A stretch of 64,000 bases of DNA. Source: Selaginella moellendorffii (lineage: Eukaryota > Plantae > Lycopodiophyta). Under the pieces are notes generated by a model. The model worked only from the letters and a program-made list of their open reading frames with translations. It was not told where the DNA came from and ran no database searches. The DNA is taken from the NCBI RefSeq assembly GCF_000143415.4, contig NW_003314336.1, forward strand, positions 547,296-611,295, given 5' to 3'. A program made the position numbers and the translations under genes. The number at the start of each line of letters is the position of its first letter. Position 1 is the stretch's first letter. Shown here piece after piece: positions 10,759-63,610 of the stretch.

Positions 10759-10919
10759 TCCTGTGGAGGGAAAACACGAAAATACGGTCGATCGCCGCGA
10801 CATTGCTAGACGATGGCGCTGCTTACCTCGATTCGATGACAGACGCGGCGCCGGCCGACGGCGAACGAGCTGGAGTGCTCCGACCTAAACCCCTAAACTG
10901 GGATTCTTTCCCCAAACTC

Positions 10920-10928
10920 AAACCCTAA
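10920..10928. promoter_or_regulatory. Telo-box AAACCCTAA in the short divergent KPNB1/PPR intergenic region
   Basis: Exact motif between the two divergent starts. Confidence 0.5.
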
Positions 10929-11033
10929 TGGCCGCTACTTCTTCCCTCGCTTTAGGGCTCGGCCGAGGATTAAACGGACTCTGTCAAATGGACCATACAT
11001 TCTGTTTAATACTATTATTATCATTACACTCCT

Positions 11034-13130
11034 ATGGTTAAAATTTATCCTCCTCCTTTATTCTTCTCCATAGGAAATAAGGATTTAGGGTTTATGAGCA
11101 GAGTTATGGCGGTGAGCAGGAATACTATGGTGGCATTGCTTGGGGCGCTCCGGGAATGCCGCGATATCGATCGCGGCAAGCGATTGCACGATCAGGCAGC
11201 GAAATCTGGAAGTCTCGCCAGCATCAGGGTCGCCAGCAGTCTCATTGCCATGTACGCCAGATCCGGGAGCATGCCGGATGCCCGCAAGGTCTTTGATGCC
11301 ATTCCTTTCAAGAATGCGGTGCCCTGGACGGCGTTGATCCTGGGGTACGGCACGAATGGCTTGCCGGAGCTGGCTCTGGAGCTGTTTGAGAGGATGGATT
11401 GCCGGCCGGATGGGCGGGCGTTTCTCTCGGCGGTGGTGGCGTGCTCGAGTTTGGCAGAGCGAGAGGGATGCTCGAAGGATTTCCATGGGATGATCGTCAA
11501 GGTTGTCTCTCTGGAGAAAGGTATGGCTATTCATTCTAAAGTAGCGAAGTGTCGTGCGTTCTCATTTGATTTGTTCTTGGCAAGCTCGCTGATTGAGATG
11601 TACGCGAAGTGTGGCAGCGTGATGGATCTGCGGAGGGTGTTTGATAGAATGCCGCTACACGATGTGGTGTCCTGGACTGGATTGATTGGAGGATACGTGC
11701 AAAACAACGATCCGGAGTTAGCTCTGGAGCTCTTCGAACACATGCAAGTTGTGAGTTGCTGCTTTCCAAACTCGAGAACTTTTGTCGCTGTGCTCATGGC
11801 CTGTGGTCGTTTGGCAGTGAAGGATCATGGATCCAAACGAAAGCTCGCAGGAATGAAAGGAGTGGCGATTCATTCCCATGCCGCGGAGATGGGATTTGAG
11901 AAGGATGTCTACGTAGCGAGCTCGCTGGTGGACATGTACGCCAAGTGTGGCTGCCTGAGCGAAGCTGGTGCGGTCTTCGACAGGATCAATCGTCCCAATG
12001 CCGTCTCGTGGAACTCCTTGCTGATGGGATGCGTGGAAAACGGGGAGAACGAGCTTGCTCTCCAGCTTTTTCGAGAGATGAGGCAGCGGAGGAACTGTGC
12101 TCCAGACGATCGGGCTTTCGTCTCGGCACTGATGGCCTGCACAGGCATCGCAGCGAAGGAACAAGGCAAGGTGGTCGATGGAAAACTTGTGAAGCTGGGC
12201 TCTCTGAAGACCGGGATGGTTATCCACTGCCAAGCTTCCAAAAGTAACCTCGACTCTCACGGATACGTAGTGAGCACGCTGGTTGATACGTACTCGAGCT
12301 GTGGAAGCATGCTGGACGCTCGCCAGATCTTCGACAGGATGCCACAGCACGACTTGGTGGCCTGGAACGCTCTCATCCGGGGATACGCCGAGAACGGTGA
12401 GCCCGAGCTCGCGGTGGAGCTATACCGGGGGATGGAGAACCAAGGCTGTGCTCCGGACGGCCGGACGTTTCTAGCAGCACTGACGGCTTGCGGGAGCTTG
12501 GCAGCACTCGAAGCTGGTCGAAGGATCCACGACGACGTTCGTAGACACCGTGCCGAGAGTGATACGTTTGTGGCCAACGCGCTGATAGACTTCTACGGGA
12601 AGTGTGGCAGTCCGGTTGAGGCACAGGGCGTCTTCGACTCTATGGAAGGATCAACGAGGAACTTGGTGACTTGGAGTGCTCTCATCTCGGGATACAGCCG
12701 CCAGGGAGATAGCCGCAGGGTGTTTGATCTCTTCCAGGCAATGCAGCAGCAACGCATCCAGCCGGATGGGATAACTCTCGCGTCGGTTCTCACGGCTTGC
12801 AGCCATGCCGGGCTGGCCGACCAAGGGAAGCTCCTGCTCGAGACGATGGTGCCGAGATTTGGCATCGCTCCCGACGTTGGTCACTACAATTGCGTGGTGG
12901 ACATGCTGGGACGGGCAAATCGTCTGGACGAGGCAGTGAAGGTGGCGACCACGATGCCGTTTGAAGCAAACGCTGTGACTTGGAAGACTGTGCTGGGTGC
13001 TTGTCACAAGTGGAACAACGTAGAAGTTGCCCGCCTTGCTTTCCAGTCCCTGGAGCGCCTGGAGGGGAGAGCTGATGCGTCGAGCCTGGTGCTTTTCGGG
13101 AATATAGTCGGCTGTGAGACACCAAGATAG
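11034..13130 (+). CDS. PLS-class pentatricopeptide repeat protein with (partial) E domain
   Basis: Intronless 698-aa ORF with repeated SSLIxMYAKCG..A..VFD.M...DVVSW motifs; ends ACSHAGL...HYNCVVDMLGRA...MPFE...W.T.LGAC; no DYW domain; true start may be 11094. Confidence 0.95.
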   Translation: MVKIYPPPLFFSIGNKDLGFMSRVMAVSRNTMVALLGALRECRDIDRGKRLHDQAAKSGSLASIRVASSLIAMYARSGSMPDARKVFDAIPFKNAVPWTALILGYGTNGLPELALELFERMDCRPDGRAFLSAVVACSSLAEREGCSKDFHGMIVKVVSLEKGMAIHSKVAKCRAFSFDLFLASSLIEMYAKCGSVMDLRRVFDRMPLHDVVSWTGLIGGYVQNNDPELALELFEHMQVVSCCFPNSRTFVAVLMACGRLAVKDHGSKRKLAGMKGVAIHSHAAEMGFEKDVYVASSLVDMYAKCGCLSEAGAVFDRINRPNAVSWNSLLMGCVENGENELALQLFREMRQRRNCAPDDRAFVSALMACTGIAAKEQGKVVDGKLVKLGSLKTGMVIHCQASKSNLDSHGYVVSTLVDTYSSCGSMLDARQIFDRMPQHDLVAWNALIRGYAENGEPELAVELYRGMENQGCAPDGRTFLAALTACGSLAALEAGRRIHDDVRRHRAESDTFVANALIDFYGKCGSPVEAQGVFDSMEGSTRNLVTWSALISGYSRQGDSRRVFDLFQAMQQQRIQPDGITLASVLTACSHAGLADQGKLLLETMVPRFGIAPDVGHYNCVVDMLGRANRLDEAVKVATTMPFEANAVTWKTVLGACHKWNNVEVARLAFQSLERLEGRADASSLVLFGNIVGCETPR

Positions 13131-19200: not shown

Positions 19201-22200
19201 ATTTCAACTTATTAGCTTCGATGTTGAAGTTGACTCTTGCATCTAGCAATCATTGGTGATGATTGACTATCATCTAGGATAGTTAATTATTCTTATCAAA
19301 AGAGTTTGCTTGATTATTGTTGATATAAAATGATTTACCGTTCTTCAGAATGGTGGATTCTTTCTTCAATGATGATTATGCACACATCTTTTTGATGGGA
19401 TGATTGATGATCTTTCATGATAGTTTGTGGTTCTCCTTGGTGGCTTATGGTTTTTCGCATTACTACATGTTCTTTGTGGTTTGCTCTAGATTGGTCTCTT
19501 GGGTTTAAGATATTGGTGAGATATTGATGACACTTGCTAAAGCAACTTTAGTTTCTTGGTGTTGTTGACTGGGATTTATTTAGATTAGCTAGTGTGATAA
19601 TTGGTATGAATGAGTGTTTGTTGGTCTTACCACATTCATTCTATTTTATTGATTGTTGCTCGAGTTAGTTTTGATAGATTTGGATGTTATTTCCTTTGGG
19701 TGATATATTCGCGAGTATTCTACTTGCCAGTCAATGATCCTTTATGTTCTTTGAGTTATCTTTCATAAGTTGTTTGGCATACTGTCTACCATCTTCGATA
19801 GTTAAACTTTATCATTGAGTTTCCTTGATGATAAACTTGCTATTGACTTTTGTTAGATGGTGATTCCTATGTTTACTAATTATGATGATCTTGGTGGTTC
19901 CTGCACTATACTTCTAAGTTATCGGATGATAACTTACTTGGAACATTTGTGTTTTAATCTAATATTTATTCACTGATAATTAAATCTCTAAGATATCATT
20001 GTTTATGACTTTGATATTGTCCATCTATTAATATTTGAACTTGGGCCAGTATAGGCAGACTGGCTTCGGCATTTCGTGTGCATGTTGAAATCTTTAGTCA
20101 TAGGGTAGCTACTGTCAACTGGTCACATCACCCGCCTCTTTATCGATGATCCTTATTCTGTTAAAAGGGTGTGACCGTGTAAACAACTCTAACTGCCTGT
20201 TTACAGTAGTCTATCTAAACCTTACCAACGGGTTTGGTTTCTTTGCTCAAGAGGGTTGGGTTCTCTCTGGCTTCTCTCTCTATGCCATTTGCGGGCAGGG
20301 GCATATCACGCTTTTGTAAGCTAGGTGACACCCAGAGCAGCAAGGGTGGCTGACTCTGTTGGTCATTTCCTTGTCAGCGACGGTCGGAAGGTGTCTAAGC
20401 TGGTAGCGCATCCGCGTTAGACAAAGAGGTTGCCTCCTAACTCATTTAAGTTGGTGCATTTCTCACATAGTGTGAATACCATGAACTTTTTCTGGAGTTG
20501 TTTCCTTGGCGGTATTCTAGACTGGAGTATGCATTGATGAGGATGTCAATCTTCCGTAGGAGGGGAGAGTGTCGCGAATGTGACTTCGGGTATCGAAAGT
20601 TACCTGTCGGCCAGTCCTTACAGACATTCTTACCTTACTGCCACGATAGCAAGAGGTCAGTATTGCTGGACCCTTTATTAGTCCCTCTTGTTCAAGTGTT
20701 AGTAAACTGGGCTTAACATCTGTACTTGGCCGGATGAGCATAAGGAAGAAATTCCTAAGTGTTTATTTAGTTGAGCATACTCGGCCCGGCTTGTTAGTTC
20801 TCTTTTGCTCTGTCTTGCACTGGCTTGATAAGAACCCTTGCATATTGAGATTGGTCCCTCAATATCGCTACATGATAGTTTACCGTGTCTGCCAAACACC
20901 CTCGCTATCATGCCCTTTATGTTAATCTCATTTCGGTCCCAAATACTATTTATGGAAAGTGTCCAGATTTGCTTATTTGGCATATTTACGGAATGTAGAG
21001 ATTGACTTGAACACAATGGTGTTTGTCCCGTGTCCAAATTCGCAATCTAACGCCATTCCATATTTAGTAAGTTTCGAGTTTGTCTCAGAGATTAACTCCT
21101 GATACTAAAGGAGGCTTCGGGTGAAAGCCCAAAGCGTGTGTTCCTCAGGGGGGGGGATATGGGGGGTTCCAAATGTATAGTAGGGATAGTGGGTAGGTTG
21201 GGCATGGCTGACCAACTTGAGGCATAGTTTAGCTCTCGCTTGCGTGCTTGTCTTTGTTCTGCATCCGGCTTGAGTCTAAGCCCAAGTTCCATTCTATGCT
21301 AGCTGGTGGAGTACTTATGTCCTTGCATTAGGCCACCGGTATGCCGAAATAGTGCTAGACTCCGTTTGGCTCTATTTTGTGTACTAGTCCTGGCATTGGG
21401 ATGTTGGTTGCTCTTGGACTGTTCCAAGTCGCTTCGGGCTCCTGTCCCTTGGGACACTGTCATGCCATTTGGCTTGACAAATGCTACAGCAGTTTTCCAA
21501 CACATGGTGAATGATGTCTTTTTGATCAGATGGTGATCGTCTACCTCGATGACATCCTCATCTATTCAAAAACTCAGGAGGAGCGCGATGAGCATGTGCG
21601 CAAGGTCCTGGCGAAGCTGTGGGAACACGGCCTATACGCGAAGCTTGAGAAATGTTCCTTCGATCAGGAGTCTATAGAGTTCCTTGGGTACATTGTCACT
21701 CACGATGGATTCTACCAAAGTCAAGACTATTCTCGAATGGGAGCCTCCACAATCAATGTCAGATGTTCAGGTTTTCCTTGGCTTCGCCAACTTCTAGCGC
21801 AAATTCATTGATCACTACTCTGACATTGTCCTTCCTCTCACGCATCTCACACGCAAGGATGTTCCCTTCTCTTGGTTTGCTGCTACCCAGCAGACATTTG
21901 ATACACTCAAGGTGGCCTTCAGTTTTGCTCCCGTCTTGATCCACGCTAATCCCTCACAACCTTTCTTCATCGAGGCTGATGCCTTCGACTTTGCCATCGG
22001 TGCTATGCTGTCTCAACTTGGAGCGGATCAAGAATTTCATCTGGTTGCTTTCCATTTGCGGAAATTCCAGCTTGCGGGAATCAATTACGAAATCCATGAT
22101 AAGGAGCTCCTTGCCATCGTGGATTCCTTTGGAGAATGGCATCATTTCTTGGAGGGGGCGGGCCATCAAACAACGGTCTGGATGTATTACAAAAATCTTG

Positions 22201-24352
22201 AATACTTTGCCACTTCCCGAGTTTTGAGCCGTTGTCAGGTAAGGTGGGCACAATTTTTGAGTCAGTTTGACTTTGTTATCAAGTACAAACCTGGAAAGCT
22301 TCAAGGCCTTCCTGATGCTCTTTCAAGGCGCTCCTATCTCAGTCTCAGGCATGGTAATCCTGCCTTCAATCAACAGGATCAGGTTATCCTCGGTCCTGAT
22401 CAGCTTCAAGTTATGGCAATTTCCCTAGCCCCTCAGGACTCCTCTTTGATGGATGCGATCAGAAACGATCTTCAATTCGATGACCTCGCCAGCGACATTT
22501 TCCCCCTTCTTCAAGCTGGACACCTAGTGACTCCTGATTGTCAGCGATTTGACGAGTTCGAGTTCTTAGATGGCTTGTTGTACCGTGGGGAGCAGTTTTA
22601 CGTTCCTGAAGGTGATGCTCAAAGGTTGGTCCTGATCGCGTGCCATAATAGCCATAAATGCTGGTCACTTTGGCATTGCAAAAGCCTATGAGCTGGTTTC
22701 ACGGGACTTTTGGTGGCCTCACATGGACGACTATATCAAAGCTTTTGTTACCTCTTGTGACTCTTGCGCCCAGAATAAGGTACCTTGTCACCTTCCTTTA
22801 GGTTTTCTTTGTTCCCTCCTGGTCCCTTCAGGTCCTTGGGAATCCATCTCCATGGATTTCTTGAGTGATCTTCCGAGTTCTGAAGGCTTCAACAGCATTT
22901 TAGTCGTGGTGGATTTCTTCACAAAGATGGCGCACTTCCTACTGTGTACGATGGAGTTTTTGGGCGAGGATATAGCAAAACTGGTATTCCGGGAAATTTT
23001 CTGACTTCATGGGATTCCTGTAGATGTGGTTTCGGATCGGGGACCTCAGTTCATCTCTTATTTCTGGCACGGTTCTTGCAGCTTCTTGGAGTGAAGGCCA
23101 ACCTCTCTTTGGTGTATCATCCTTAAACTGATGGACAGTTCGAGCAAACGATTCAGACGTTGGAACAATTCCTGAGGTGCTTCATCAACTATCATCAGGA
23201 TAACTAGTTTGATATCCTTCCCCTTGTTGAGTTCTCTTATAACAACTCTGTTCACTCCTCTCTTTGAGTTTCCCCCTTCTTTGCAAACTCTAGCCGAAAT
23301 CCTCAATTCAATCTCTCACTTCCTTCTCCATCTGAATCCTCTTGTTCAAATCCCCGCTCTAAGGAATTTGTCTCAAACCTCCAAGAAATCCACAACTCCA
23401 TCTCCTTCTACCTCCATCGTGCTCAGGAATCTCACAAAACATTTGCCAATGTCCATCGTCAGGATTGTCCCCCTTACAATATCGGGGATAAAGTCTGGCT
23501 CCTCAGGCGAAATATTTCCACCACCAGGCCATGTCCCAAACTTGATTTCAAACGCCTCGGTCCTTTCCCTATCACTTCCATCATTAATCCTGTCACTTAT
23601 TGCCTTGCACTTCCCTCCTCATATCAAATTCACCTTGTTTTTCACTCCTCTCTCCTTGAGCCTTATATTCCCAATTCTATTCCAAATTGGGTCATTCCTC
23701 CGCCTCCACTAGTATAGCTTGAAGATGGGTCTGAGTACGAGGTTTAGGACATCCTTGATTTCAAGATCTCACGGTCTAAACTCTACTATTTTCGACTGGA
23801 AGGGTTATAGACTTGTGGAACACATTTGGGAACCTGTGGACAACATGATTCATTCTCCTGACCTTGTTCAAGACTTCCACCACCGCTATCCTTCTCGTCC
23901 CAGTCCTCATTCTTTTTCTCCATCTCCCATCCTTCACTGCCCATTTTATCCTCCTCTTTGTTCTCATTCATGTCCTCATTCCACTTGTTCTTGAGGAGGG
24001 GGTGCTATCAGGAATCCCCCAATTCTTGCCTGACTCTTGCCGGATTCCTGACATGCAAACCACATTCCTGACTCTCAAGACATTCCTGACTCTCTAATTT
24101 CCCATACAAATCCTGAGTCTCGAGCCACATTCCTGATGATGATTGTGTTGCCTCCTTGACCTCAGCTATATTTAGGCCGTCCTCGATCCAAGAGTGGTGG
24201 AGCTTCATCAACCTATAGTATATATAAGTTAGCCTTGTTCCATTTCTCCACAATTTGAATCAATGCTAATCTAAGGCCTCTTCTTTGTTTCCACTAGCTT
24301 TTCTCTTTGTCTTCTGCATTTTCTAGTCTTGATCTTGTTGGGGGTCTTGACA
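16268..24352 (+). mobile_element. Chromoviral Ty3/Gypsy element (Tcn1-like), degenerate, 5' part deleted
   Basis: 5' LTR piece 16268-16475 matches 3' LTR 24006-24352 (preceded by PPT GAGGAGGGGG); RT YLDDILIYS at ~21540; RNase H EADAFDFAIGA/NYEIHDKELLAIV; integrase WESISMDF; chromodomain-like WKGY..HIWEP at ~23800. Confidence 0.9.
16476..21450 (+). mobile_element. LTR element with ~1.15-kb LTRs and non-coding ~2.9-kb interior, nested in the 5' LTR of the chromovirus
   Basis: 5' LTR 16476-17625 (TG...CA); PBS TGGTATCAGAG 17628-17638; PPT AGGAGGGGAGAG before the 3' LTR at 20570; 3' LTR truncated at ~21450. Confidence 0.9.
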
Positions 24353-34370: not shown

Positions 34371-34470
34371 NNNNNNNNNNNNNNNNNNNNNNNNNNNNNN
34401 NNNNNNNNNNNNNNNNNNNNNNNNNNNNNNNNNNNNNNNNNNNNNNNNNNNNNNNNNNNNNNNNNNNNNN
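34371..34470. other. Assembly gap (100 N)
   Basis: Run of N. Confidence 1.
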
Positions 34471-38200: not shown

Positions 38201-40050
38201 CTAGAGTATTTGGGTGTTCCAATGATGGCTTCTTTGACAATGAACATTTCCTTTTACGACATTGACTTACTATATTGCAACATAAGCAACTTATCCCCGA
38301 TAAGGGTATGTTTAACTTCTTTATGCCATTAGAAGTCTTGGATAGTTACCTTCTACTCGTTTAACCAATTACCTGCACCTCTTGCTTAGTTGCTTCATAG
38401 TTGTCAAGTCCTACAACTCATTGCTGGTGCTTCCACACCTCCATCATTATCTGGGTCACCACACTCTACCACATGCCTTCCAACTTAGGCTATGCCATTT
38501 CTATTTCCATTGGGATTCCCTTGGCAAGGGGTTCTCATGAACCCATCAACATAATCTCAAGGTATCACACCTTGGCCCATTTGGTGTCTCCACACCATCG
38601 GCTCCATAAATCTACTTTTGTGACACTTTACACTTGTGTCTAGGTCTTTGCCAAAGCCAACCCAGTCGTTTCTCATACTAACTATCTGTTAGCACTACAC
38701 CATAGTGTTCGCACACAACTCTGCACCAAAGTTGCTTCTTCTAGGAATACCTTTTCCAAGACTTTAGTATGACACATTCTGCCACCCATGAAATACCCAC
38801 TGTTCTCATACTTGGATTTTATGATCCTCCCCATCCTTCGTGAAGCACAACACACCTCAGTCCAAATGCTTTTATCAGTCCTTTAAGACTATTCCTTGAC
38901 TCCACTTAAGTCATTCAGCCTTTTGGACTTTTCTTAATCCCTCAACCTATAAGGTTTTACTTTTGAGATGCTAGTTCATTGGAATACAACTTCTTGTATT
39001 CATGTCCTACTCACCAGGACCACCATTATAAGTGTTCTTCCAACACTTAACTATTTTTCGATAATTGTGTGCTACCTTCGCCCGTTAAGATTATCCATCT
39101 ATATGATGGGAATATCGATTCATCCTCTAAGCACACCCCCAACTCCTAGGGTTGTTCTAGCATTTATTCAAGGTAGCCCGACTACCATTCCAAGGACTTA
39201 TATCCTCATCCATATTTGACCTCCCACAGTCATTAATTTTGGTTTCAAATTCATAAGCATCAGCCTTGACTTCATGAGGGTAATTTTGTGACTCCTTTAT
39301 CGTTTTAGAGTCTTTATCTTCTCTGTGATCCTAACAATAATTGTTTACCACAACTACATTAACCAATTTGCTGAATCAAATGCTCATCTGAATCACATCC
39401 TAAACTCAATGAGGAAAATCTTGCACTATTCCCAAGATCCCAAAGTCATTCCATTATTGGCCCTTTTCTATCCACCACCTCATTTACAAGTTCATACATG
39501 AACTATAATGGAAAGCCATGTCTTCCCGACCTGCTACTCCTTGAGGATAGGCCCACTCTTCGGACTTTCCGATGCCAACACCAATGGTGATATACTTGAG
39601 CACCAATAAAAGTCGGATTAAGGAATAGCTCCGATACCAAATTGTAAGTGACTAATTTTTCCATGAATTGTGTTGTACTTTCTACTTAGTTGTTTCATAG
39701 TTCATAAGTTTTACAACTCATTACCAATACTTCCACCCCTCCATCATTATTTGGGTCATCACACTTTAACTACATGTCTTTCAGCTTAAATTATGCTATT
39801 GCCATTCCCATTTTCATTCCCATTTTCATAGAATTCTTTTGGCAAAAAGATACCAAAGAATGTCACTTTATATATTGTTGACAATTAACTAATATATCAT
39901 ACATCTGGATTTAGAGTTTGCTGAAGTTGGTCTTATAAAGTTGACAACCCCATTCGAAATATTCCATAATATCATTTTTATTCTGAAACTTCAGGATGTT
40001 GGTGGTTACACACACACGAAAAAGAAATCCAGTTTCACATACATTCATAC

Positions 40051-40755
40051 TCACTGCTTGGCATAGAGAAGCAGGATCTCAGGATTCAGTGCTTGCTTGG
40101 GGACCTCGGGATTCATTGCTGTCGGGATTCACTGCTTGCTTGGGAACCTTGGGATTCAGTGCTGGCTTGGCATAGATAAACAGGCTTTCGGGTTTCACTG
40201 CTTGCTTGGCATAGAGTAAGGGGGCTTCGGGATTCCCTGTTTGCTTGGCATAGAATAAGGGTAAGGGGGCTTCGGGATTCCCTGTTTGCTTGGCATAGAA
40301 TAAGGGGGCTTCGGGATTCACTGCTTGCTTGGGGTGGGATTCATTGCTGGCTTGGCATAAAAAAACAGGCTTTCGGGATTCACTGCTTGCTTGGGACCTT
40401 GGGATTCATTGCTGTCTTGCATAAAAAACAGGCTTTCGGGATTCACTGCTTGCTTGGCATAGAGTAAAGGGGCTTCGGGATTCACTGCTTGCTTGGCATA
40501 GAATAACGGGGCTTCGGGATTGATTGATTGCTTGAGTTCTGGAGTTGTGTTCTCTTCTTTAGCCTTCGTTTCTGTAACCTCCTTCAGAATAGATGTTGGG
40601 TTCGTTTTTGATTGTTCAACAGCATCTATTTCGGTTCGGAGAGCTAAAGTCGCCTGAAAAACGAAATAGACAATGTCAAGAGCATCTAGAGCAACTGTAA
40701 AACTTACAGTGAAGAACAACACTAGAACGAATGAAATTGCATGAGTGTTTTGTAT
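40051..40755 (-). pseudogene. Secreted multi-core RiPP (burpitide / cyclopeptide-alkaloid) precursor peptide, with lesions in this assembly
   Basis: Signal-like exon (x)QNTHAISFVLVLFFT|ATLA with a 54-bp GT-AG intron 40654-40707; acidic leader; nine NPE/KPE-core-AK repeats (APLFY, APLLY, SLFF[Y], SLFFY, APLFY, APLPLFY, APLLY, SLFIY, ILLLY); stop TGA at 40051-40053; expected ATG reads ATA (40753-40755); frameshifts near 40330 and 40120. Confidence 0.8.
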
Positions 40756-41326
40756 ATTACAATATGAAGCCACTTTCTTAAATAGTGTTGGAGGTGCCAG
40801 AAAGCGCAAAGACCAGAGTAAAATATCATGTGAAAAGTCAATTCATAGCCAACTTTAGGTTTGCATATGTTTACTGAACTACAAAGAAACTTCTAATTTT
40901 ATTTTTCTTTTGGAAAAGAGTAAAACTGTTCATTGATAAATGAAGTTCAATTTTGTCGTGAAGTTCTATCAAAAGACAATATTTCTGCGAGCCTGGCCCA
41001 CTGTATCAGAATAAATAATAGCACACTATAATGACCACATGTTGAATAATGACACACCAACTAACATTGGATCATGGTGCCCACTTGACATATGAACAAG
41101 TCACCTAGTAGTGGACAAAATAAAGCATCTAGCTCAGAGTCATTATAAAATATATAAATAGATTGGTTACCTTGGCTTTAGGTTTAAAGGTATTGCATCA
41201 ATCATACACCTCTAGAATGCTTCAGATGACATTTTCTAGATATGTATGGTTTCTGACATGATTCTGCACGTGATGAGTTGACAATCGATCTCCAAGAATA
41301 ATAAAATAAACCTAAACTGACGGGAA

Positions 41327-41346
41327 AAACCCTAACGTTAGGGTTT
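41327..41346. promoter_or_regulatory. Perfect palindrome of two telo-boxes, AAACCCTAACGTTAGGGTTT; G-box CACGTG at 41267-41272
   Basis: Exact sequence 20 bp upstream of the oxygenase ATG. Confidence 0.55.
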
Positions 41347-41365
41347 CTCGCTTGCATCCGCACTT

Positions 41366-42355
41366 ATGGAGGACCAGTTTGGTAAGTTCCCTGTTGTTGT
41401 GGTGCCAAATCCAAACGAACGAGAATTGCCGCTGGATGACTTGATATCCAAGGTCCAGGAGCACAAAGCCTGGATCCATGACAAGCTCGCTCGCAATGGA
41501 GCATTGCTCTTAAGAGGATTTCCGGTGAAAGACGCAGCGGATTTTGATCAAGTTATCAAAGCTCTGGACTACAAGACCTTGCATAATCACTTTGGGAGCC
41601 AAGACCGGAAACACGTCAAAGGCTCGGTTTACACAGCAAATGACGACCTCCCTCTCGAGATTCCAATCGGCTTCCACAACGAAATTACTTATGTAAGCTT
41701 GGACAGTAGAGAAATTTGTCAGTCGTGAAGCTTTCCTTGCAGATGCCCGTCATTCCCGACGTGCTTGTTTTCTACTGCGAGGTTGCACCGCCCCAAGGAT
41801 GTGGTGGCGCAACGGGCATTGTGAGAGGGGATGCTGTCTACGAGGACTTGTCCAAAAAATTCCCTAGCTTTCTTCAAGATTTGGAGGACAAGGGAGCGAT
41901 ATATTGCTTCACCGTGCCAGCATCGGAGCAACCAAAATATGGCAGGTACCACACCACATTCTTCTTCAATGGATAGTTATATGAGATTTCTTTCCTTCAG
42001 CAATATGAATGGGTACAAGAGAAAGCAGCTTGAGAATGGACTCGTGAAGCTCTACCTTGGGCCTTGCCCAGCAATCAAGCAGCTTCCAAGCGGCAAGAAG
42101 GCATGGTTTAATGCGATTGGATCAAGCTACGTCCGTGATTCTAGCGAGCCATATGTTGAGTTTGGAGACGAGACAGCCATGCCCACGGATGCTATCAAAG
42201 CCGCCTGTGAAATCATGCAGGAGAAACAATTTGCTGTGCAGTGGGAGCAAGGGGACGTGCTCATACTGGAAAATTCTCATGTGCTCCATTCTAGACATTC
42301 CACTTCCAAGCTCGAGCCTACTCGCAAAATCCTTGTGTCCATGCTCAAGTATTGA
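41366..42355 (+). CDS. TauD / clavaminate-synthase-like Fe(II)/2-oxoglutarate-dependent oxygenase (~294 aa)
   Basis: Exons 41366-41692, 41743-41945 and 42001-42355 join in frame; GALLLRGF, VYTAN, IGFHNE (HxE), FYCEVAP..GGAT, W.QGDVLILEN..VLHSR and RKILVS. Confidence 0.92.
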
Positions 42356-42483
42356 TTGTATTGTTTACCGAATCTCTATTTCTCTTGTTAACAAGCTGTT
42401 AAACGAAACTCTGCTTTATTAAACTACATTTATTTTGAAATTGAATAAATGAACGGGCGTAGGCAAAAGCCTTTATCATTTCC

Positions 42484-43446
42484 ATGTCTATTGGCGGTCA
42501 CGTTTTGCTACATGTCTTGCTTGCGATTTCTCTCGTGTATCATGTGGTCAGCTTCAAGAGCCTCTTAGTCATGAGCTCTCGCTCATTCTCAACTCTTACT
42601 TTTGTTTTCGACGCAGGGGTGTCTCCTTCCTGGCTCAATACTGGAGAGGCTGTCGCCCTTGGATGATGCCTCCAAAATGCGCATCAAGCGGGAAATCCAT
42701 GCTTCCGGCACCATGCCACTCGAGTCGTGCAAAAAAAGCCGGCTTCCTGTGTGCCACCACATTGATCATCACCGCCAGCATCATCACCTTGCCAGGAATG
42801 GAATCTAACCTTGGAATTTGATCCCCCAAACTTTTCTTCCAGATGAACACGCTTGTCGGCTGCCACCGCCTCTCCTCTGAGACAACTCAATTCCTCCCAG
42901 TATGTTCACGCATTCACTCCTTGAGCCAGTTCTTGGAACCATGGGTTTCTCCCGACTGCTGCCAACGATGCAAATCCTGATGCAGTCTTCTGTATCAAAG
43001 GCAATGTGGGACAGCTTGAGCATGTGTTCTATGGATGCCAGCATCAAGGACGAGATCAAGGCGTGCCATGTCTCCGTGAAGACTATCCTGGAGCAAGCGT
43101 CTTCGATAGTCAGCAGGCCCGATTTGAAGCATGTCATAAACACTGTGAGCGATGTGGAGGGGGAATTTGAGGTGGTAGAAAAGGCTATGGTTGCTACAAA
43201 TGGGACTCTAGCTTGTCATCCCATGACATTTCCATATGCACTCTACATGTGCCATACAATTCGCTTATGGTGACACTGAAACCATATTCACAATCTTGCA
43301 GCAAGCTTGTGGAGGTTCCTGCAGTTTGTCACTTGCACACCTCAGGCTTTGACCCATCCCACATTTCATTCAAAGTGCTACACATGAAGCTTGGTGTGGG
43401 AGAAGTCTGCCACTGGCTCTTAGAGTGTCACTTTGTTTGGTATTAA
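42484..43446 (+). pseudogene. BURP-domain protein (candidate burpitide cyclase), frameshifted in this assembly
   Basis: Signal peptide MSIGGHVLLHVLLAISLVYHV, intron ~42547-42616, LSPL..C..AGFLC, KLFF, FLP, C...KAC..S, then CHPMTFPYALYMCH (CH-x10-CH) and AVCHLHTSGFDPSHISFKVL..VCHW...W; frame breaks near 42735, 42820, 42900 and 43265. Confidence 0.9.
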
Positions 43447-44342
43447 CATCTCAAATCAAATGTCTCAAATAAGAAAATATTAAAGATTATATACTATTTT
43501 GAAAGTTTTGCAGTGCTCACCCTGAAGCATGAGAGGGATGCATATATTGTTAATATTTGGAGCTAAATAAAAAATATAAAGAGGTTTAACCTTGTTTGGG
43601 TAACATTTTGAAATTCTTTACCACTTAAACACCCCCAAGTTACCTCAAAAGCTCTACCATGCCTTAATCTTACCTATTGACCATGTAAAAATTCTTCCCC
43701 CAAAAAAGTCTTTATCCTAAAGATAAATTGTATTGATGATCACCTTTTTTAGGGAACTTTACTCAAATTCATGATCCATCATCCATAACTATATACATCT
43801 AGAAGGTCCTTTCATTCCAAAATAATACACACTTCAACTGACTAATATACAATGTTAGATGAATTTTCACTTTAGATAGTAGCCACACTTGATAATGCAC
43901 TCCAACACTTTTTATGGACCAATATATTTGTGAAAAAGTTTATCACTTATCCCACTTTACAAAAACACTAAAATGTTTATCACTCATTTGATGGAAAGTT
44001 ATTTGCACAAAAATGAGATTTCCCACCTTATATTCCCAAAATTAATAATGCTTATTAGCAAGCTTTTATACCTACTTGCAAATTTTACTTACATACCATA
44101 GTGGCCAAATCAACCACATCTGAATCAAGTTTGTTTAGAAGATCAATGTAATTTTCTTTTTGGCGAATGCTACAATGTAATATATCCTCCACCTCATTTA
44201 CATGCTTGATCTACATATTTGTCTCTCCACTTAAGAGCTTTAAAGTCCTTTATATATGCTTTGCAAATATATCGCACATGGTTTTCACTTTTTATATGGT
44301 GTTTTACAATAGGATAATTACAAAGCAAAACTGTAACCCTTA

Positions 44343-45059: not shown

Positions 45060-48000
45060 CATTTTTGTCCTAATTGTATGTGGCCTAAGTGTTCAGCAAA
45101 CTCTTTTTGGATAAGTGGAAAAATGCTCGTCAAATACTGATCTCACGACGTAGCATTGGTAGCTCATGGCAATTGCAAAGGTAAACCCAGTTCCATTGGT
45201 AATATTAAATAATGACCATATAAAAGTTTATATGGTGAAGCACTAACAGAACCCTACACCCTTGTGATATATGCATACCGAAAAGACGGCAAATAACCAT
45301 CCCAATCCGAATGCTAAAAGTTCACGTACTTCATGATCATTCCTTTGAATGTTCAAACGAGCCGTTCCGCCAAACTATCTGACTATGCATGATAAACACT
45401 CATGAAAGTGTGGTGTATCCCCAACCAAAACGTCAAAACATGAAATGCCTCAGCCATAAATGCAGGACCATTATCCGAAAGAATCCGCTCTAGAGAAGAA
45501 TGTTGGAACACCACTTGATTGAGGAAGAAGTATCCAAAAATAATTGCATAGATGTTAGTAAAAGCACCAATTTCCACCCAACGAGTCAAATAGTTAGAAG
45601 CAGTAATAACTATTCACTGCTTGTAGTTGATCGTGGAAAAGGTTCTATAAGATCAAATGCCATTAACTCAAATGGACGGGAAACTGCAATTGACTCCAAC
45701 CGTCATTTTGCAGAATGAGGGGGAGTATTACGAGCTTGGCACCAAACATAGTTACGCACATACCGGATAACATTATGTTGCATCTTTGGCCAATAAAAAG
45801 ACTTGCACAGCTTCTCGGTCACATGACGATATCCCATATGCCTGCATAGAATAGGAGAATCATGGTAGGCATGAAGAAACTGTGGAATAAAAATGGAAGG
45901 CACCACTAGCCGTAAATGATCATCAAGATCTATCCTCATAAAATAAAGAAGGTCGTCTTCAAGGTAATATTAAGAATGCAAATGCTGGAATGGTAAATCA
46001 TCAGCAAGTGATGCAAAATTCTTAGACCCATCTTGAAGCCTTTGAATCCATGGCTCAATCTTTTGAGCTTTGCAAGCCTCATCAAGAGAAGGTAGATCTT
46101 GCTCTGCGCCTTGTGGACACTGAATGTCAAGTATAACAACTGCCGACGGCACAAAATCCTCATTTAGAAAATCCATAAATACTGGAACAACAGGCTTGTC
46201 AAAAATATGAGAAGAGAGTGGAGAAGGAAGAGGAGCTCGAGAAAGGGCATCAACATCAACCATAGAAGTCCCTGGGCACAGAATCTTTATCTAGAAAATC
46301 CACAGATGCTAAAACAACAAACTCTTCAAAAACATGAGAAGAGAGTGAAGAAGGAAAAGGAGCTCGAGAAAGGGCATCAGCATCAGTCATAGAACTCCCC
46401 AAGCATTAAAATCATATATCTAAAACTTCAAAGCCCACTGAGCAGTACGATTAACAAAGTTCTTTCGCTTCAATAATGAAGTAACAGCAGTATGATCACC
46501 TTCTAGTAACATCCGAGAACTATGTAGATATGCATGAAGATTTTTGAAACCCTTCTTCTCTGTCGTGGAGTAGTTCACCTCCGCTGGTTGTAATGTACGG
46601 CTTATATACGCAATGGGATGGCATTGATCAGGCACACTCGGGCTCTTTTTTATCAACTCACCTCCAAGACCAATATCAGAAGCATCCACGTGCAAAATGA
46701 ATGGTTGAGTGTAGTCAAGATATGCCAAAATCAGAGGAGTCATCAATAGCTTTTTGAGATCTACGAATGTTTGCTCACAATCTGGAGACTAGATGAAAGA
46801 TGATATTGATGGCTTCAGTAATGTTGGCAATGATGCAGTGTGATTAGAAAGATGATCCACAAAACGACTGAGATACTGCACCTTGCCCAGAAAGTGCTAC
46901 ACATCATTCACACACTTCGAAGTAGGGAACTTTAGAATAACCACAAGTTTATCAAGATCAACTTGCAAACCTTCATGAGAAATACAGTACCTAAGATAAG
47001 TCGTATCCTTGAACCCCAACATACACTTCAATCACTTCAATTTTAAACCAACATCTTCTAGCTGATCCAACACTTTACAAACATCACGGATGTGTTCCTC
47101 TCTGTAAGCAACTAAAGGGAACAACTCGAGAGACGATCTATAGGGGTTCAAATATAAAGGGAAAAGGCCCATGAACAAGAGTGCATCCCTTTTTCCTTGG
47201 TTAAGGGTCTTGAGATATTTAGGGTTAAGCGTCCTTGGGTTTGAATAATACTGGGTTGGCTAACCTCCCGGGAAGTCCAAATTCAGGAGCTTACATTTGG
47301 TATCAGAGAAGTCTCAGGTCTGACTCTAATGGTTGGCTAGGGGAATCACACCACATGTTGATTGACATCTAGCAAGTCCAGTTCACTCCCGGCTGGGCTT
47401 GACCTGAGGGGTAGGGTGTCAAGAGAGCGGGGCTCTCAAAAGAGCTACGGCTCTTAGCTTTGTTCACAAGAGCGTGAACTTGTAGGGAAGCATGATCCAT
47501 AGAATGAAAGAGCCCACATAGTATGGATTTGTAATTCGATCCATAGGGGTTCAAATGTAGAGGGAAAAGGTCTATGAATAAAAGTGCACTTGCTTTTTCA
47601 ATTGGTTAAAGTTCTTGGGATATTTGGGGTTAAGTGTCCCTAAAGCTTACACTCCCACGTGCCTTATAATGGATCAAGACATTATCAATAAAGTCAGTAG
47701 TCACCTTTGGCATATCACATAGAATTTTATCCATCATTTGCTAAAAAGTTGCTGGAGCATTGTTCAAACCAAACAGCATCACCAAGAACTCGTATAAACC
47801 AAACGGTGTACGAAAAGCAATCTTAAGAATATCTTTTTCGGCCATCGGTACTTGCCAATACCCACAAGCAAGATTTACCTTGGTGCATTGTTCAAACGAA
47901 ACAACATCATTAAAAACTCGTATAAACTAAATAGTGTACAAAAAGTAGTCTTAGGAATATCTTTTTCGGCCATCGGTACTTGCCAATACCCAGAAGTAAA

Positions 48001-49570
48001 ATCTATCTTGGTGAACTAACAACTTCTCCTCAAATGATTCAAGAGATTAGTAGTGTGAGGAAGAGGGTATAAATTCAAGATCATCACTTTGTTTAATAAA
48101 CGATAATCAATGCAAAAACAAATACTCCCATCAGGCTTCGTCACAAAATGAGGTTCACATGCCCAAGGACTCTGTGACTTTCAAATAACACCTTTCTCCA
48201 ACATCTCCTTGACATTTGTACGTAAAATCTTGATCTCTTTGGGTGATTGACGACAAACAGTAACTTTGATTGGACAAGCATCCTAGGTTGGAATCAAATG
48301 ATGTGTAGCAATCTTGGCCCCAGATGATAGATATATTCAAAGAAATTAGTATACTCCTGCATGAGCCGGTCAACTGCTGTAACACAAATACTATCGAAGG
48401 GATTAGAAAGGGGGAGAGTAGAATAAGATAAAAACATAAAAGGAAGTAGTGGGAAGACAAAAGTAATGGAAGCAGAGGTAAAAGCAAAGGGACAAAAAGG
48501 TACGAAAGTGAGAGGAATATATGAAATATAAAGAAGTATGAGATAAGGGGGAGAAGCCTCAAAGTCACACTTGGCATGATTATGCTGCAACCAATCCATA
48601 CCAAGGATGAGGTTAAAATCTTGACTCGGAATTACCCATAATGATTGCAACTCAAGCTCGAGATCACCCATATATACAACTAAGTCTACCTCGTCCCGTG
48701 CACATGTATGTGTATAGCCGTTGCCATAAAGAATGAAAACTGGCTCCACTGCATGATGCAAGTGTAGATGGCAATATGTGGCAACAGGTCGAGCAATAAA
48801 AGATAAACTCAAACCTATATCAACTAATAGGGAGAGAATAATAAGAGACCTCTTATTACAAAAACAAGCTTAGAGAATAAACATTGAATGAACTGGTGCC
48901 AAATGAACCCCTTAATAATACTTCTGAAAGAAAGGTAGAGGGGTCATTGATTTATTCATGCAAGATCCTTCTATTACTCGCACGACTACTTGTTTCCCAA
49001 ATATATCTTAGTATCTAAACCTTCCACTGCAGCAGCACTAACATGACATTGTTGACACTAAGGTCTGCACGCAGGAAATAGAGGTTGCCAATCCGAAAAA
49101 TACTGACAATGCCGATAAATGTGACCAACTTCATCATACACCTAGCAGCGAACATCACGGCCATAACCATGTCCTCACCCTTGCCCTTGGACTCGAGTTG
49201 CAACAACATCAACCTCCATTAGAACAAGACCATCACCTATAGGAAGTGGAGTTGAAGGACGTGTAGTGAGAAGTGGAAGAGACGACGTCTTGTAACATTG
49301 TGCCAAGCGAAGAACATCGGCAAGGGTGGCTGGAGCAAGTGCCTGCACAAGTCTAACAAGATCTTGATGAAGTGCTGGCCACAACATTTTTAGCTTGATT
49401 TGCTCTGATATATTTGGCTCTGCACAAAGCAAGAGGCTTCGAAAACAATTGCCAAATTGCATCACCAACTTGGATGGCCCTTGACAAAGATGATGCAATT
49501 GTTGGAAGGCATTATCATAATTATTGGTATGTTTGAATGCATGTTTGAAGACATTCAAGAGAACACACTA
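45060..49570 (-). mobile_element. Degenerate Gypsy gag-pol (family of 59110-63610), with small internal tandem duplications
   Basis: gag KLKMLWPALHQDL, protease ILGMDWL, RT, RNase H LHVDASDIGLGG and integrase ILSDNGPAF align with the plus-strand copy; duplications ~46200-46390 and ~47760-48010. Confidence 0.92.
47103..47651 (+). mobile_element. Complete Cassandra-like TRIM inserted in the Gypsy RT
   Basis: 5' LTR 47103-47295 (TGTAAG...CTTACA, 5S domain); PBS TGGTATCAGAG 47298-47308; ~235-bp interior; internally deleted 3' LTR 47530-47651; near-TSD CTCTC/CTCCC. Confidence 0.88.
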
Positions 49571-59109: not shown

Positions 59110-62100
59110 CATGGTAGATCAGCAATCTCCTCCTTTGACTCTAGAGCAGTAGTTGGTTCAATTGTTTGATGCCATGCGCTTGCAATTGAACAACCAAACT
59201 CAATTGATGGCAGCATTCACGGCACGTGGTTCAACTCCTTCTGCTCTTGGTGCCAATCTTGCGTTCGGCTGGAGTTCTTTTGTGAGAATCTTGGGGATGA
59301 TGTGTACCATTGGTTCGATCACTTCACGGTGATTGCCACATATCATTCTTGGGATGATGCTCGACGTTTGCGTGAGTTCCCCACGTGTTTCTAAGGGACA
59401 GCGTTGTAGTGGTACAATGGATTGAGCATAGCCACTCATGGGGATTGGAGTGTTCTTCTAGACGCTTCAAATGTGCCTTTGAATATGCTGGCGATTGTGA
59501 TGATGCCTTCCAAAAATTGCATTGTTTTCGCCAAGGGCCATCTGAGTCGGTGATGCAATTTGGTGTTCGTTTCTGAAGTCTTTTGCTTCGTGTAGAGCCT
59601 GATATGTCAGAGCGGATCAAGCTAGAAATGTTGTGGCCAGCACTTCGTCAAAATCTTATCGGCCTTGTGCATGCCCTTGCTCCTGCCACCCTTGACGATG
59701 CTCTTCGCTTGGCACAACGTTATAAGACGTTGCCTCTTCCACTTCTCGCTGCACGTCCTTCAGCTCCACTTCCTATGAGTGATGGTCCTATTCTAATGGA
59801 GGTTGATGCTGCTGCTACTTGAGTCCAAGGACAAGGGTGAGGACGTGGTTGTGGCCATGATGTTCGTTGCTGGGCATGTGATGAAGTTGGTCATACTTAT
59901 CGGCGTTATCGACGCTTTCCGGATTGGCAACCTCCATTTCTTGGGTGGAGACCTTGGCGTCAGCAACGTCCCGTTGGTGCTACTGCGGTGAAAGGTTTGG
60001 ACACCGAGGTGCATCTGGGAAATGAGGAGTCGCGCGAGTAATAGAGGGACCTTGCGCGAATAAGTTAGTGACCCCCCCCCATCTTTCTTTCGGGAGTATC
60101 ATCAAGGGGTCCACTCGGCACCGGTTCATCCAGTGTCTATTTTCCAAGCTCGTTTTTATAACAAGAGGTCTCCTATTATTCTCTTTGTGTTAGTTGATAT
60201 AGGTTCGAGTTTATCTTCTATTGCTGGACCTGTTGCCACACGTTGTCATCTACACTTGTGTCATGCGGCGGATCCAGTTTTCATTCTTTATGGCAACGGC
60301 CGTACACATGCATGTGCACGAGATGAGGCGGACCTGGTTGTGCTTGTGGGCGATCTCGAGCTTGAGTTGCAGTTGTTATGGGTGGTGCTGAGTCAAGCTT
60401 TTGGCCTCATTCTTGGTATGAATTGGTTGCAACGCAATCATGCCAAGTGTGACTTTGAGGGTTCTCCCCCTTGTCTCATACTTCCTTATGTTTCATTAAT
60501 TCCTCTCACTTCCGTACCTTTTCGTCCCTTTACTTCTACCTCTGTTTCCATTACTTTTGTTCCCCCACTATTTCCTCCTATGTTTCCATTTTGTTCTGCT
60601 CTTCCCTTTTCCGATCCCTCCAATGATCTTGGTGTTGCAGCTGTTGACTGGCTCATGAAGGAGTATTCTGATCTTTTTGAATTTGACCTATCGTCTGGGG
60701 CCAAGATTGCCACACATCATCCAATTCCAACTAGGGATGCTCGTCCAGTCAAGGTTCTTGTTCATTGTCGGTCACCCAAGGAGATCAAGATTTTACATGC
60801 AAACGTCAAGGAAATGTTGGAGAAGGGTGTTATTCGGAAGTTGCGGAGTCCTTGAGCATGTGAACCTCATCTTGTGACGAAGCCTGATGGGAGTATTCGT
60901 TTCTGCATCGACTATCGTTCGTTAAATGAAGTGACGATCCTAGATGTGTACCCTCTTCCTCACACTGCTAATTTCTTGGATCGTCTAGGGCAAAGTTGTT
61001 GGTTCACCAAGCTAGATCTTGCTTGTGGGTACGGGCAAGTACCGATGGCCGAAGAAAATATTCTTAAGACTGCTTTTCGTACACCATTTGGTTTGTACGA
61101 GTTCTTGGTGATGCTGTTTGGTTTGAACAATGCTCCAACAACTTTCCAACGGATGATGGACGAGGTTCTTTGTGATATGCCAGAGGTGATTGTTGACTTC
61201 ATTGATGATGTCTTGATTCACTCGGAGGGGACGTGGGAGAAGCACATTCATGATGTATGTAAAGTTTGCATGAAGGTTTGCAAGTTGATCTTGACAAACT
61301 TGTAGCTGTTCTAAAGTTCCCTATTCCGAAGTGTGTGAATGATGTGCAATGCTTCCTGGGCAAGGTGCAGTATCTCGGTCGTTTTGTGGATCATCTTTCT
61401 GATCGCACTGCAGCGTTGCAAGCGTTGTTGAAGTCATCAACATCATCTTTCATCTGGTCTTCAGATTGTGAGCGGGCGTTTGTGGATCTCAAAGAGTTGT
61501 TGACGACTCCTTTGGTTTTGGCATATCCTGACTACACTCGACCTTTTATTTTGCATGTAGATGCTTTTGATATTGGTCTTGGAGGTGTGTTGATGCAAGA
61601 AAGTTCGAGTGTGCCTGGTCAGCGTCATTTTATTGCATATATAAGTCGTACGTTACAACCAGTAGAGGTGAACTACCCTACGACAGAAAAGGAGTGTTTA
61701 GCGGCAGTTTGGGGTTTCAAGAAACTTCATGCATATCTACATGGTTCTTGGATGTTATTTGAAGGTGACCATGCTGCTGTTACTTCATTATTGAAACGGA
61801 AGAACTTGGTTGGTCATACTGCTCGGTGGGATTTGAAGCTTCAAATATATAATTTTGATGTTGTTCATCGCCTAGGGAGTTCTATGGCTAATGCTGATGC
61901 CCTTTCTCGAGCTCCTCTTCCTTCTCCACTCTTTTCTCATATTTCTGATGAGTTTGTTGTTCTAGCATTTATGGATTTTCTAAACGAGGATTCTGTGCCA
62001 ACGGCAGTTGCTGTACTTGACGTTCAGTGTCCACAAGGTGCAGAGCAAGATCTACCTTCTCTTGATGAGGTTTGCGAGGCTCAAAAGATTGAGCCGTGGA

Positions 62101-63610
62101 TTCAAAGACTTCGAGATGCATTTGAGAATCCTGGATCACTGCCTTTTCAGCATTTATATTCTCAATGTCATCTTGAAGATGGCCTTCTTTATTTTGTGGG
62201 GACAGATCCTGATGATCATTTACGGTTGGTGATGCTTTCTATCTTTATTCCGTGGTTTCTCCATGCCTACCATGATTCTCCTGTTCTAGGGTGGCATATG
62301 GGACATTGTTGTGTGACCGAGAAGCTGCGCAGGTCTTTCTATTAGCCGGAGATGCGATGTGATATTATCCGGTATGTGCATAGCTGCGTTTGGTGCCAAG
62401 CTTGTAATACTCCCCCTTGTGCTATGGAAGGACGGTTGGAGCCAATTGCAGTTTCCCGTCTGTTTGAGTTGGTGGCGTTTGATCTTATGGGACCTTTTCC
62501 ACAGTCGACTGTTGGCAATGAATATGTTATTATTGCTTCTAACTACTTGACTCGTTGGGTGGAAATTGGTGATCTTGCTAGTGCCTCGGCAACTGTTGTT
62601 GGATACTTCCTCCTCAATTGAGTGATTTTCTAGCATTCTTGTCCAGAGCGGATTCTTTCGGATAATGGTCTTGCATTTATGGTTGAGGCATTTCATGTTT
62701 TGACATCTCGGTTGGGGATACGCCACACTTTCATGAGTGCTTATCATCTACAATCAGATGGTCTGGTGGAACGGCTCATTTGGACATTCAAAGGGATGAT
62801 TGTGAAATATGTGAACTTTCAACATTCAAATTGGGATGGTTATTTGCCGTCTCTTCAGTATGCCTATGTCACAAGGGTGTAGAGTTCTGTTGGTGCTTCA
62901 CCATATAAACTTCTATATAGTCATGATCTAATATTACCAATGGAACTGGGTTTACCTTCGCGATTGCCACGAGCTACCGATGTTAGGTTGTGAGATTAGT
63001 ATTTGACGAGCATTTTTTCACTTATCCAAAAAGAGTTTGCTGAACACTTAGGCCACATACAATTGGGACAACAATGGCATTACAACTCCCATCATCAATC
63101 ACTTGTGGAGTACAAAGTGAATGACTTGGTGTTAGTCTATTTTCCCTATCTTATGATACGTGGTTTATCTAAAGGGCTTTATGCTCAGTGGAAAGGACCA
63201 TATCAGGTGTTGTGGCAAGTTGGATCACAAGTTTATGAAGTTTGACATGACGTCTAGCAAACCAATCCTCCAGAAATTGTGCATGTGTAGCAATTGAAAC
63301 ACTTCGTACAAAGGGATCATGAACAACTGATACCACCTACAAATCTACCGATGCCTCCTCCTAACATTCCTTTAGATCCAGGCCCATCTACAAGAGAACC
63401 TTGATGGTCTTCCATTATTTCGAGAGAAGGGGATGATGTGAGGTCCAAGTGTATGGCTATGATATTGTATATTATAATTAGTGTAATAGGATTTTGGTAG
63501 CCGTTAGATTGGTTTTAATTCGGACCACTTGCTTCTGTATATAAGCTAGGGTTTTGGGCTAATTGATATGCACATTTCAGTATTCCCTTTCCATATTCCA
63601 TGCACTCACA
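59110..63610 (+). mobile_element. Degenerate Ty3/Gypsy element gag-PR-RT-RH-INT, 5' LTR missing
   Basis: gag from ATG ~59110; LVDIGSS protease; RFCIDYRSLN and FIDD RT; RNase H; H-H-C-C and LSDNG integrase; PPT and 174-bp 3' LTR 63437-63610; many stops; no chromodomain seen. Confidence 0.95.

Follow-up and report, generated by a model that had tools for sequence, protein, structure and literature searches.

The 64,000-nt stretch of Selaginella moellendorffii DNA analysed here (hereafter the window) carries a candidate peptide precursor gene on the minus strand, consisting of a first-exon relic, a leader and an array of tandem units (40051–40521). On the plus strand next to it are an intact TauD/At3g21360-like Fe/2OG oxygenase gene (41366–42355) and a stand-alone BURP pseudogene (42484–43446). 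The oxygenase gene lies between the other two, and the distance from precursor to BURP gene is 1.7 kb. The precursor gave no Pfam match and has no BURP domain in its own open reading frame (ORF). Beyond the array, no further NPE-core-Y units were found in the whole 64 kb window. Its other contents include an importin-beta gene (8341–13130, minus strand), a PPR gene (21912–22691, plus strand), LTR-retrotransposon fragments (RNase H, aspartic protease, integrase-like) at 45383–48812 and 60133–62345, and a 100-N gap at 34371–34470.

Tandem Repeats Finder reported a 39-nt period with 9.5 copies at 40151–40534 (score 240), bearing out the repeats of about 39 nt that a preliminary description of this DNA had noticed, and all of the cores and coreless units that it had listed were present in the minus-strand translations of 40521–40051. 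To count units, the minus strand was cut at each AATCCC, which yielded 15 units between 40521 and 40048. Unit 1 (NPE-APLFY-AKQAV) and unit 2 (APLLY) are each 39 nt long. They are followed by a degenerate SLFF unit of 37 nt (unit 3, 40443–40407) that reads SLFFMQD and has lost its Tyr, a coreless unit of 26 nt (unit 4), a 39-nt SLFFY unit (unit 5) and a truncated coreless unit of 23 nt (unit 6, 40341–40319). Units 7 (APLFY), 9 (APLLY) and 10 (KPE-SLFIY) again measure 39 nt, and unit 8 (APLPLFY) measures 45 nt. Unit 12 is a 16-nt remnant of the SLFFY type from which 23 nt are missing (40129–40114), and it is flanked by two coreless units of 27 nt, NPKVPKQAV (unit 11) and NPEVPKQAL (unit 13). The last unit reads NPE-ILLLY-AKQ and then TGA (40053–40051), the ancestral stop. 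The earlier inventory therefore holds for the units that it listed, and overlooked the degenerate SLFFMQD unit.

All eight full cores have a C-terminal Tyr with Leu or Phe at Tyr-2, as had been described, and they follow the rule for cores of the cyclopeptide-alkaloid type, which calls for a final Tyr and for Leu, Phe or Pro at Tyr-2. The proposed pairing of a conserved spacer with a variable core was likewise recovered: when the seven 39-nt units were compared column by column, an average of 1.4 units deviated per nucleotide position in the core, compared with 0.33 in NPE and 0.67 in the tail. At a higher order, the array is a duplicated block in which units 1–6 match units 7–13, and its cores fall into the three types APL[F/L]Y, SLF[F/I]Y and ILLLY. 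The spacer co-varies with core type, APLxY being followed by AKQAV or AKQTG and SLFxY by AKPAM or AKPAL.

No single open frame runs through all of the core units. Units 1–6 share the frame of the leader and of the sole long ORF (40318–40809), which ends where this first frame hits a TGA at 40320–40318; the part of the array so read (40318–40521) forms the C-terminus of the annotated protein XP_024516312.1. Units 7–12 are read in a second frame, and the block at 40130–40318 (APLFY, APLPLFY, APLLY, KPE-SLFIY and NPKVPKQAV) is legible in that frame only. Units 13–15 return to the first frame, which at 40051–40113 reads the NPEVPKQAL unit, the ILLLY unit and the ancestral TGA. The ILLLY unit and its stop had been assigned to a third frame, but both are in the first, and the array spans two frames. 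The frame shifts because of the 23-nt unit (40341–40319), which makes the first break, and the 16-nt remnant (40129–40114), which makes the second. Units 3 and 4 together amount to 63 nt (37 + 26), so that the frame is kept, reading SLFFMQDSNESQGPKQAV; the three 1-nt differences within these two units add up to frame retention. Before the ORF stop, then, are APLFY, APLLY, the Tyr-less SLFF unit and SLFFY, and past it are the second APLFY, APLPLFY, the second APLLY, SLFIY and ILLLY, which make up five of the eight cores listed.

These lesions recur in independent sequence. The window is identical to S. moellendorffii scaffold GL377640.1 of assembly GCA_000143415.2 (100% identity over 12,887 nt). 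Contigs of four public runs were placed on 40000–43500, one of DNA (X1) and three, X4, X5 and X6, that contain spliced TauD-like transcripts and are therefore RNA. Numerous substitutions and indels in intergenic DNA separate X1 from the window, which marks X1 as another haplotype or accession. The 23-nt unit is unchanged in DNA contig X1 rec2 (40303–40392) and collinear in the RNA-run contigs X4 rec9, X5 rec15 and X6 rec21, and the 16-nt remnant is present in X1 rec1 (40000–40207, gap-free). Contig X1 rec5 (40477–41333) has no indel below 40790, a stretch that includes the first exon. We therefore rejected an assembly error as the source of the frame breaks, given the identity to GL377640.1 and the presence of the 23-nt unit in X1 and in all three RNA runs. 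Frame-restoring introns inside the array were also rejected, as the RNA-run contigs are collinear over 40263–40452.

The 5′ part of the precursor gene is damaged as well. The leader, ATLALRTEIDAVEQ...ELKQSI (40522–40653, minus strand), includes a decayed unit, NPTSILKEV (40560–40620), that aligns with NPESILLYDKE units of the paralogues described below and looks like a former core unit without its Tyr. Upstream of the leader is the 54-nt GT..AG intron of the NCBI model (40654–40707), homologous to the 51-nt intron of the paralogue, and upstream of this is the ancestral first exon (40708–40742), an ATG (40742–40740) plus 32 nt. In the paralogue 33 nt follow the ATG. With 1 nt fewer in this exon, the native ATG has fallen out of frame and reads MQFHSF-stop, six codons; the signal-peptide-like stretch ISFVLVLFFT is in the other frame, where it has no ATG. 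An N-terminal signal peptide in frame with the array could thus not be recognised in the sequence. The NCBI gene model, XP_024516312.1 (146 aa, ‘uncharacterized protein LOC112341075’), drops the 54-nt intron (40707–40654), ends at NPTPSKQ and begins with a different exon of 12 codons (MQARNPNVRVFP; 41322–41357, minus strand). This exon is taken from a telomere-like sequence, a perfect 20-nt palindrome, lies 9 nt from the start codon of the TauD-like gene, and was probably introduced to rescue the annotation; none of the contigs of the three RNA runs joins it to 40776. The palindrome (41327–41346) consists of two inverted telo-box units and precedes the TauD-like ATG by 20 nt, and DNA-run depth rises about tenfold in its bin.

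The locus is not silent, which speaks against its being a relic. Contigs of all three RNA runs span 40263–40776, covering the ORF and about 60 nt more; none covers 40000–40233, a weak negative, given that contigs drop rare sequences. The ORF is moreover open over 163 codons from the leader to 40318, and the protein that NCBI predicts holds three intact cores. These observations argue for a shortened but working precursor, of which the 146-aa product, or one with another start, would carry APLFY, APLLY and SLFFY to be cyclised in trans by BURP proteins encoded on scaffold GL377587.1 (see below), the out-of-frame units being 3′ untranslated sequence. The alignment of X5 rec17 stops exactly at the exon boundary 40653 with six letters left over; it may represent the spliced form, and as such hints at spliced sense RNA. 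Several features of the same region count the other way. The transcribed part has no in-frame ATG and the homologous ATG is frameshifted, the NCBI start exon is telomere-like palindrome that no RNA contig joins to the gene, and the hydrophobic segment lies 25 residues in, whereas that of the paralogue is N-terminal. The intron is kept unspliced in two contigs (X4 rec12 and X6 rec25), and the local cyclase is dead, as set out below. A working precursor is, on balance, unlikely.

The retained minus-strand intron would also suit a transcript of the opposite strand. Contig X6 rec25 continues past 40776 into 12 A that are absent from the genome template, and the 64 kb window contains no run of 12 or more A; the added residues may be the poly(A) tail of a plus-strand, antisense RNA. 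If so, RNA over the array could be mainly an antisense, polyadenylated non-coding transcript, and the repeat would no longer be coding. The tail is seen in one contig at depth 5, however, and contigs carry no strand information. Position 40776 also coincides with a minus-strand AG acceptor, and X5 rec17 hints at splicing on the minus strand. We consider this antisense account very improbable.

The neighbouring BURP gene (42484–43446, plus strand) matches PF03181 with an E-value of 1.7e-16, and its four CH motifs are recognisable. It starts with a signal-peptide exon and an intron that resemble those of XP_024534238.1, a stand-alone BURP protein of S. moellendorffii to which it is 48% identical. 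The second exon is broken by at least three frameshifts, with frame changes at about 42790, at about 42865 and between 43261 and 43306, and by two premature stops, one near 42819 and one at 42878, where XP_024534238.1 has a conserved Trp. The arrangement CH-X10-CH-X25-27-CH-X25-26-CH of an intact PF03181 domain is accordingly not present in one frame. In DNA run X1 the gene has in addition a 5-nt insertion at 42794, a duplication of GGAAT, and so carries a frameshifting polymorphism. The NCBI record has no gene annotated here, and no RNA contigs were found on 42457–43500 in the three runs that contain the spliced TauD-like transcript, which is a weak negative. The local BURP gene is thus a multiply broken and apparently silent pseudogene.

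The TauD-like gene, by contrast, is the only intact, spliced and expressed member of the trio. Its three exons (41366–41692, 41743–41942 and 41998–42355) are separated by introns of 50 nt and 55 nt that are spliced in all three RNA runs, in which the gene is strongly represented, and its protein is related to At3g21360 (PDB 1y0z, E 4e-16).

Relatives of the pair were reached by a phmmer search with the BURP fragment 42902–43273. The best match was XP_024534238.1 (56% identity), a 314-aa, BNM2C-like protein, and the next was SkrBURP of Selaginella kraussiana (QXY82431.1; 36% identity, E 1e-10). The 314-aa BURP protein is encoded twice on GL377587.1, as the identical XP_024534238.1 and XP_024534417.1, and each copy stands head-to-head with a minus-strand repeat gene, an intact precursor gene (L002:6993-7574 and L003:7159-7721). 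The tandem duplication that carries both cassettes also copies a RabGAP-TBC gene. The paralogue genes encode MAWLITVLLCFT, then have a 51-nt intron, and continue with AAAALRTLKDNEKQ... and 8–10 units in one open frame, of the form KQANPE-SILLY/SFFLY/SFVFY/AFVFY/AFFFY-[ND]KE[AV].

The precursor studied here shares with these genes a TATA-like box that precedes the ATG by about 42 nt, a first exon of 12 codons whose last residues are F-T, a 51- or 54-nt intron, a second exon that opens A-x-x-A-L-R-T and the 39-nt period. In both, units follow NPE-[S/A]-xxx-Y-xK, with N-P-E, Tyr and Lys invariant and the three positions after S/A variable, and XP_024516312.1 matches the precursor of the intact cassettes with a BLASTP E-value of 6e-12. 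The two differ in the spacer, which is AKQAV and shorter here but [ND]KE[AV]KQA in the paralogues, and in the cores, which are APLFY, APLLY, SLFFY, SLFIY and ILLLY here and SILLY, SFFLY, SFVFY, AFVFY and AFFFY there. They also differ in state and layout: the GL377587.1 genes are intact, directly head-to-head and have no TauD-like neighbour, whereas here the TauD-like gene intervenes and both precursor and BURP gene are broken. By these sequence features, the locus belongs to a Selaginella KQA(V)NPE-xxxxY precursor family, which we define here. Protein searches added nothing to this family, though as negatives they are weak, the sequences being repetitive and candidate length limited: the in-frame part matched only its own NCBI model, XP_024516312.1, out of 5.8 billion proteins; a profile of three family members again returned XP_024516312.1 only; and the out-of-frame block 40130–40318 matched no predicted protein.

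The preliminary description had read the array as the precursor of a ribosomally synthesised and modified peptide, and had named as contrary evidence homologues in which the core/spacer pattern is absent, or which show no linkage to BURP genes. What we found was the opposite, as the paralogues keep the NPE-core-Y pattern and are head-to-head with an intact BURP gene, and a BURP gene adjoins the array at this locus too. The family is therefore supported as a split burpitide family of the cyclopeptide-alkaloid type, on sequence features and gene linkage. Burpitides are plant ribosomal peptides that are ring-closed by copper-dependent BURP cyclases, and in cyclopeptide alkaloids an ether joins the Tyr oxygen to a beta-carbon, mostly of Leu, Pro or Phe. 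The present gene would qualify as a split precursor in being built of tandem units whose flanks are conserved around a short, variable core with a final Tyr, and a stand-alone four-CH BURP gene is co-localised with it while its own ORF has none, though that BURP gene is a pseudogene.

Among the closest described systems is SkrBURP, the source of selanines A and B, a fused cyclase with the cores VLFYPSY, ILLYPSY and FLLYPY. It comes from the same genus, its cores likewise contain x-L-x-Y ending in Tyr, and the spacer that follows starts with AK[KQ]AV. In SkrBURP, unlike the present gene, a single protein of 525 aa contains both cores and cyclase, the spacers (AKKAVPASVEDPSQADADN) are longer, and a second Tyr is found in many of the cores (VLFYPSY). 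Between our repeat region and the N-terminal repeats of SkrBURP, BLASTP gave an E-value of 0.039, which is not significant, and the likeness is confined to AK[KQ]AV. Split systems have been reported from Coffea, Ceanothus and Ziziphus. Those compared here (ArbA2/ArbB2 of Coffea arabica, ZjuPrec-FPIY/ZjuBURP of Ziziphus jujuba and CamBURP1) have in common with the present locus a separate multi-core precursor co-localised with a stand-alone BNM2-type BURP gene, Tyr-ending cores, and Leu, Phe or Pro as the ring residue. They are from flowering plants, whereas the host here is a lycophyte, and the Fe/2OG decarboxylase ZjuDC is unlinked, whereas a TauD-type oxygenase is clustered with our precursor. 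The publication on ZjuDC makes no mention of TauD. ArbA2 is listed under PF10950; membership in that family was rejected for our precursor, since neither XP_024516312.1 nor either of the two paralogues matched PF10950 at E-values up to 10. Because there is no match even at E 10, the precursor scaffold is unrelated in sequence to the angiosperm one.

A repetitive protein rich in Pro, Lys and Tyr that matches no Pfam family might also be an ordinary secreted or structural protein of the Pro/Lys-rich cell-wall type that is unconnected with peptide natural products. To this we give almost no credence: the x-[L/F]-x-Y motif of the repeat is one that SkrBURP cyclises, the core is where most of the variation falls, and three separate copies of the family adjoin stand-alone BURP genes.

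In working relatives, the steps of a pathway can be proposed on the model of SkrBURP and of the split systems of angiosperms. A short signal peptide would send the repeat protein into the secretory pathway, where a separate copper-dependent BURP cyclase would join the phenol oxygen of a core's C-terminal Tyr and the beta-carbon at Tyr-2. [quoted passage not shown] The five-residue core of the preliminary description, with cleavage after NPE and after Tyr, is a guess. A core of four residues would fit at least as well, because the residue after NPE varies little (S/A) and because the published ring cores VLFY of SkrBURP, FLLY and LLIY have four residues.

In the copy studied here, the signal exon is 1 nt short, the frames are split by the 23- and 16-nt units, the Tyr is lost once and the partner BURP gene is broken. 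We therefore consider it likely that a split burpitide precursor specific to Selaginella has decayed here, and that what remains is a relic rather than a functioning peptide library. The reading as a peptide precursor thus stands for the family, through the paralogues and their BURP linkage, and goes too far for this locus, where array, ATG and BURP gene are broken. The ‘library of diversified cores’ proposed earlier comes down to three core types in a duplicated block, and at this locus it is a past state because cores lie past the stop, the ATG is out of frame and the BURP gene is a pseudogene.

Intact paralogous cyclases do exist on GL377587.1, and such enzymes, encoded elsewhere, could act in trans on this precursor, which favours the working precursor considered above. 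A bolder variant, which we hold to be quite improbable, would have the truncated precursor translated from a non-annotated start, its three in-frame cores cyclised in trans and the TauD-like protein acting as a tailoring oxygenase. If this were true, the TauD-like enzyme could, for example, hydroxylate or oxidatively decarboxylate the C-terminal Tyr, and with ZjuDC there would then be two unrelated 2OG-enzyme solutions.

In the literature that we searched, the only Selaginella burpitides so far are those of the fused SkrBURP, split pairs are known only from flowering plants, and no paper was found that describes the GL377587.1 cassettes or links split burpitides to S. moellendorffii or lycophytes. 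The NCBI model XP_024516312.1 should be flagged for its doubtful N-terminus. Together with its intact paralogues, the locus suggests that S. moellendorffii has a split burpitide family whose scaffold is unrelated in sequence to the angiosperm one, and the ancestral cores (x-L/F-x-Y) offer sequences for comparison with metabolite data from plants. This copy is itself probably dead and, being decayed, would record birth-and-death turnover in the precursor family.
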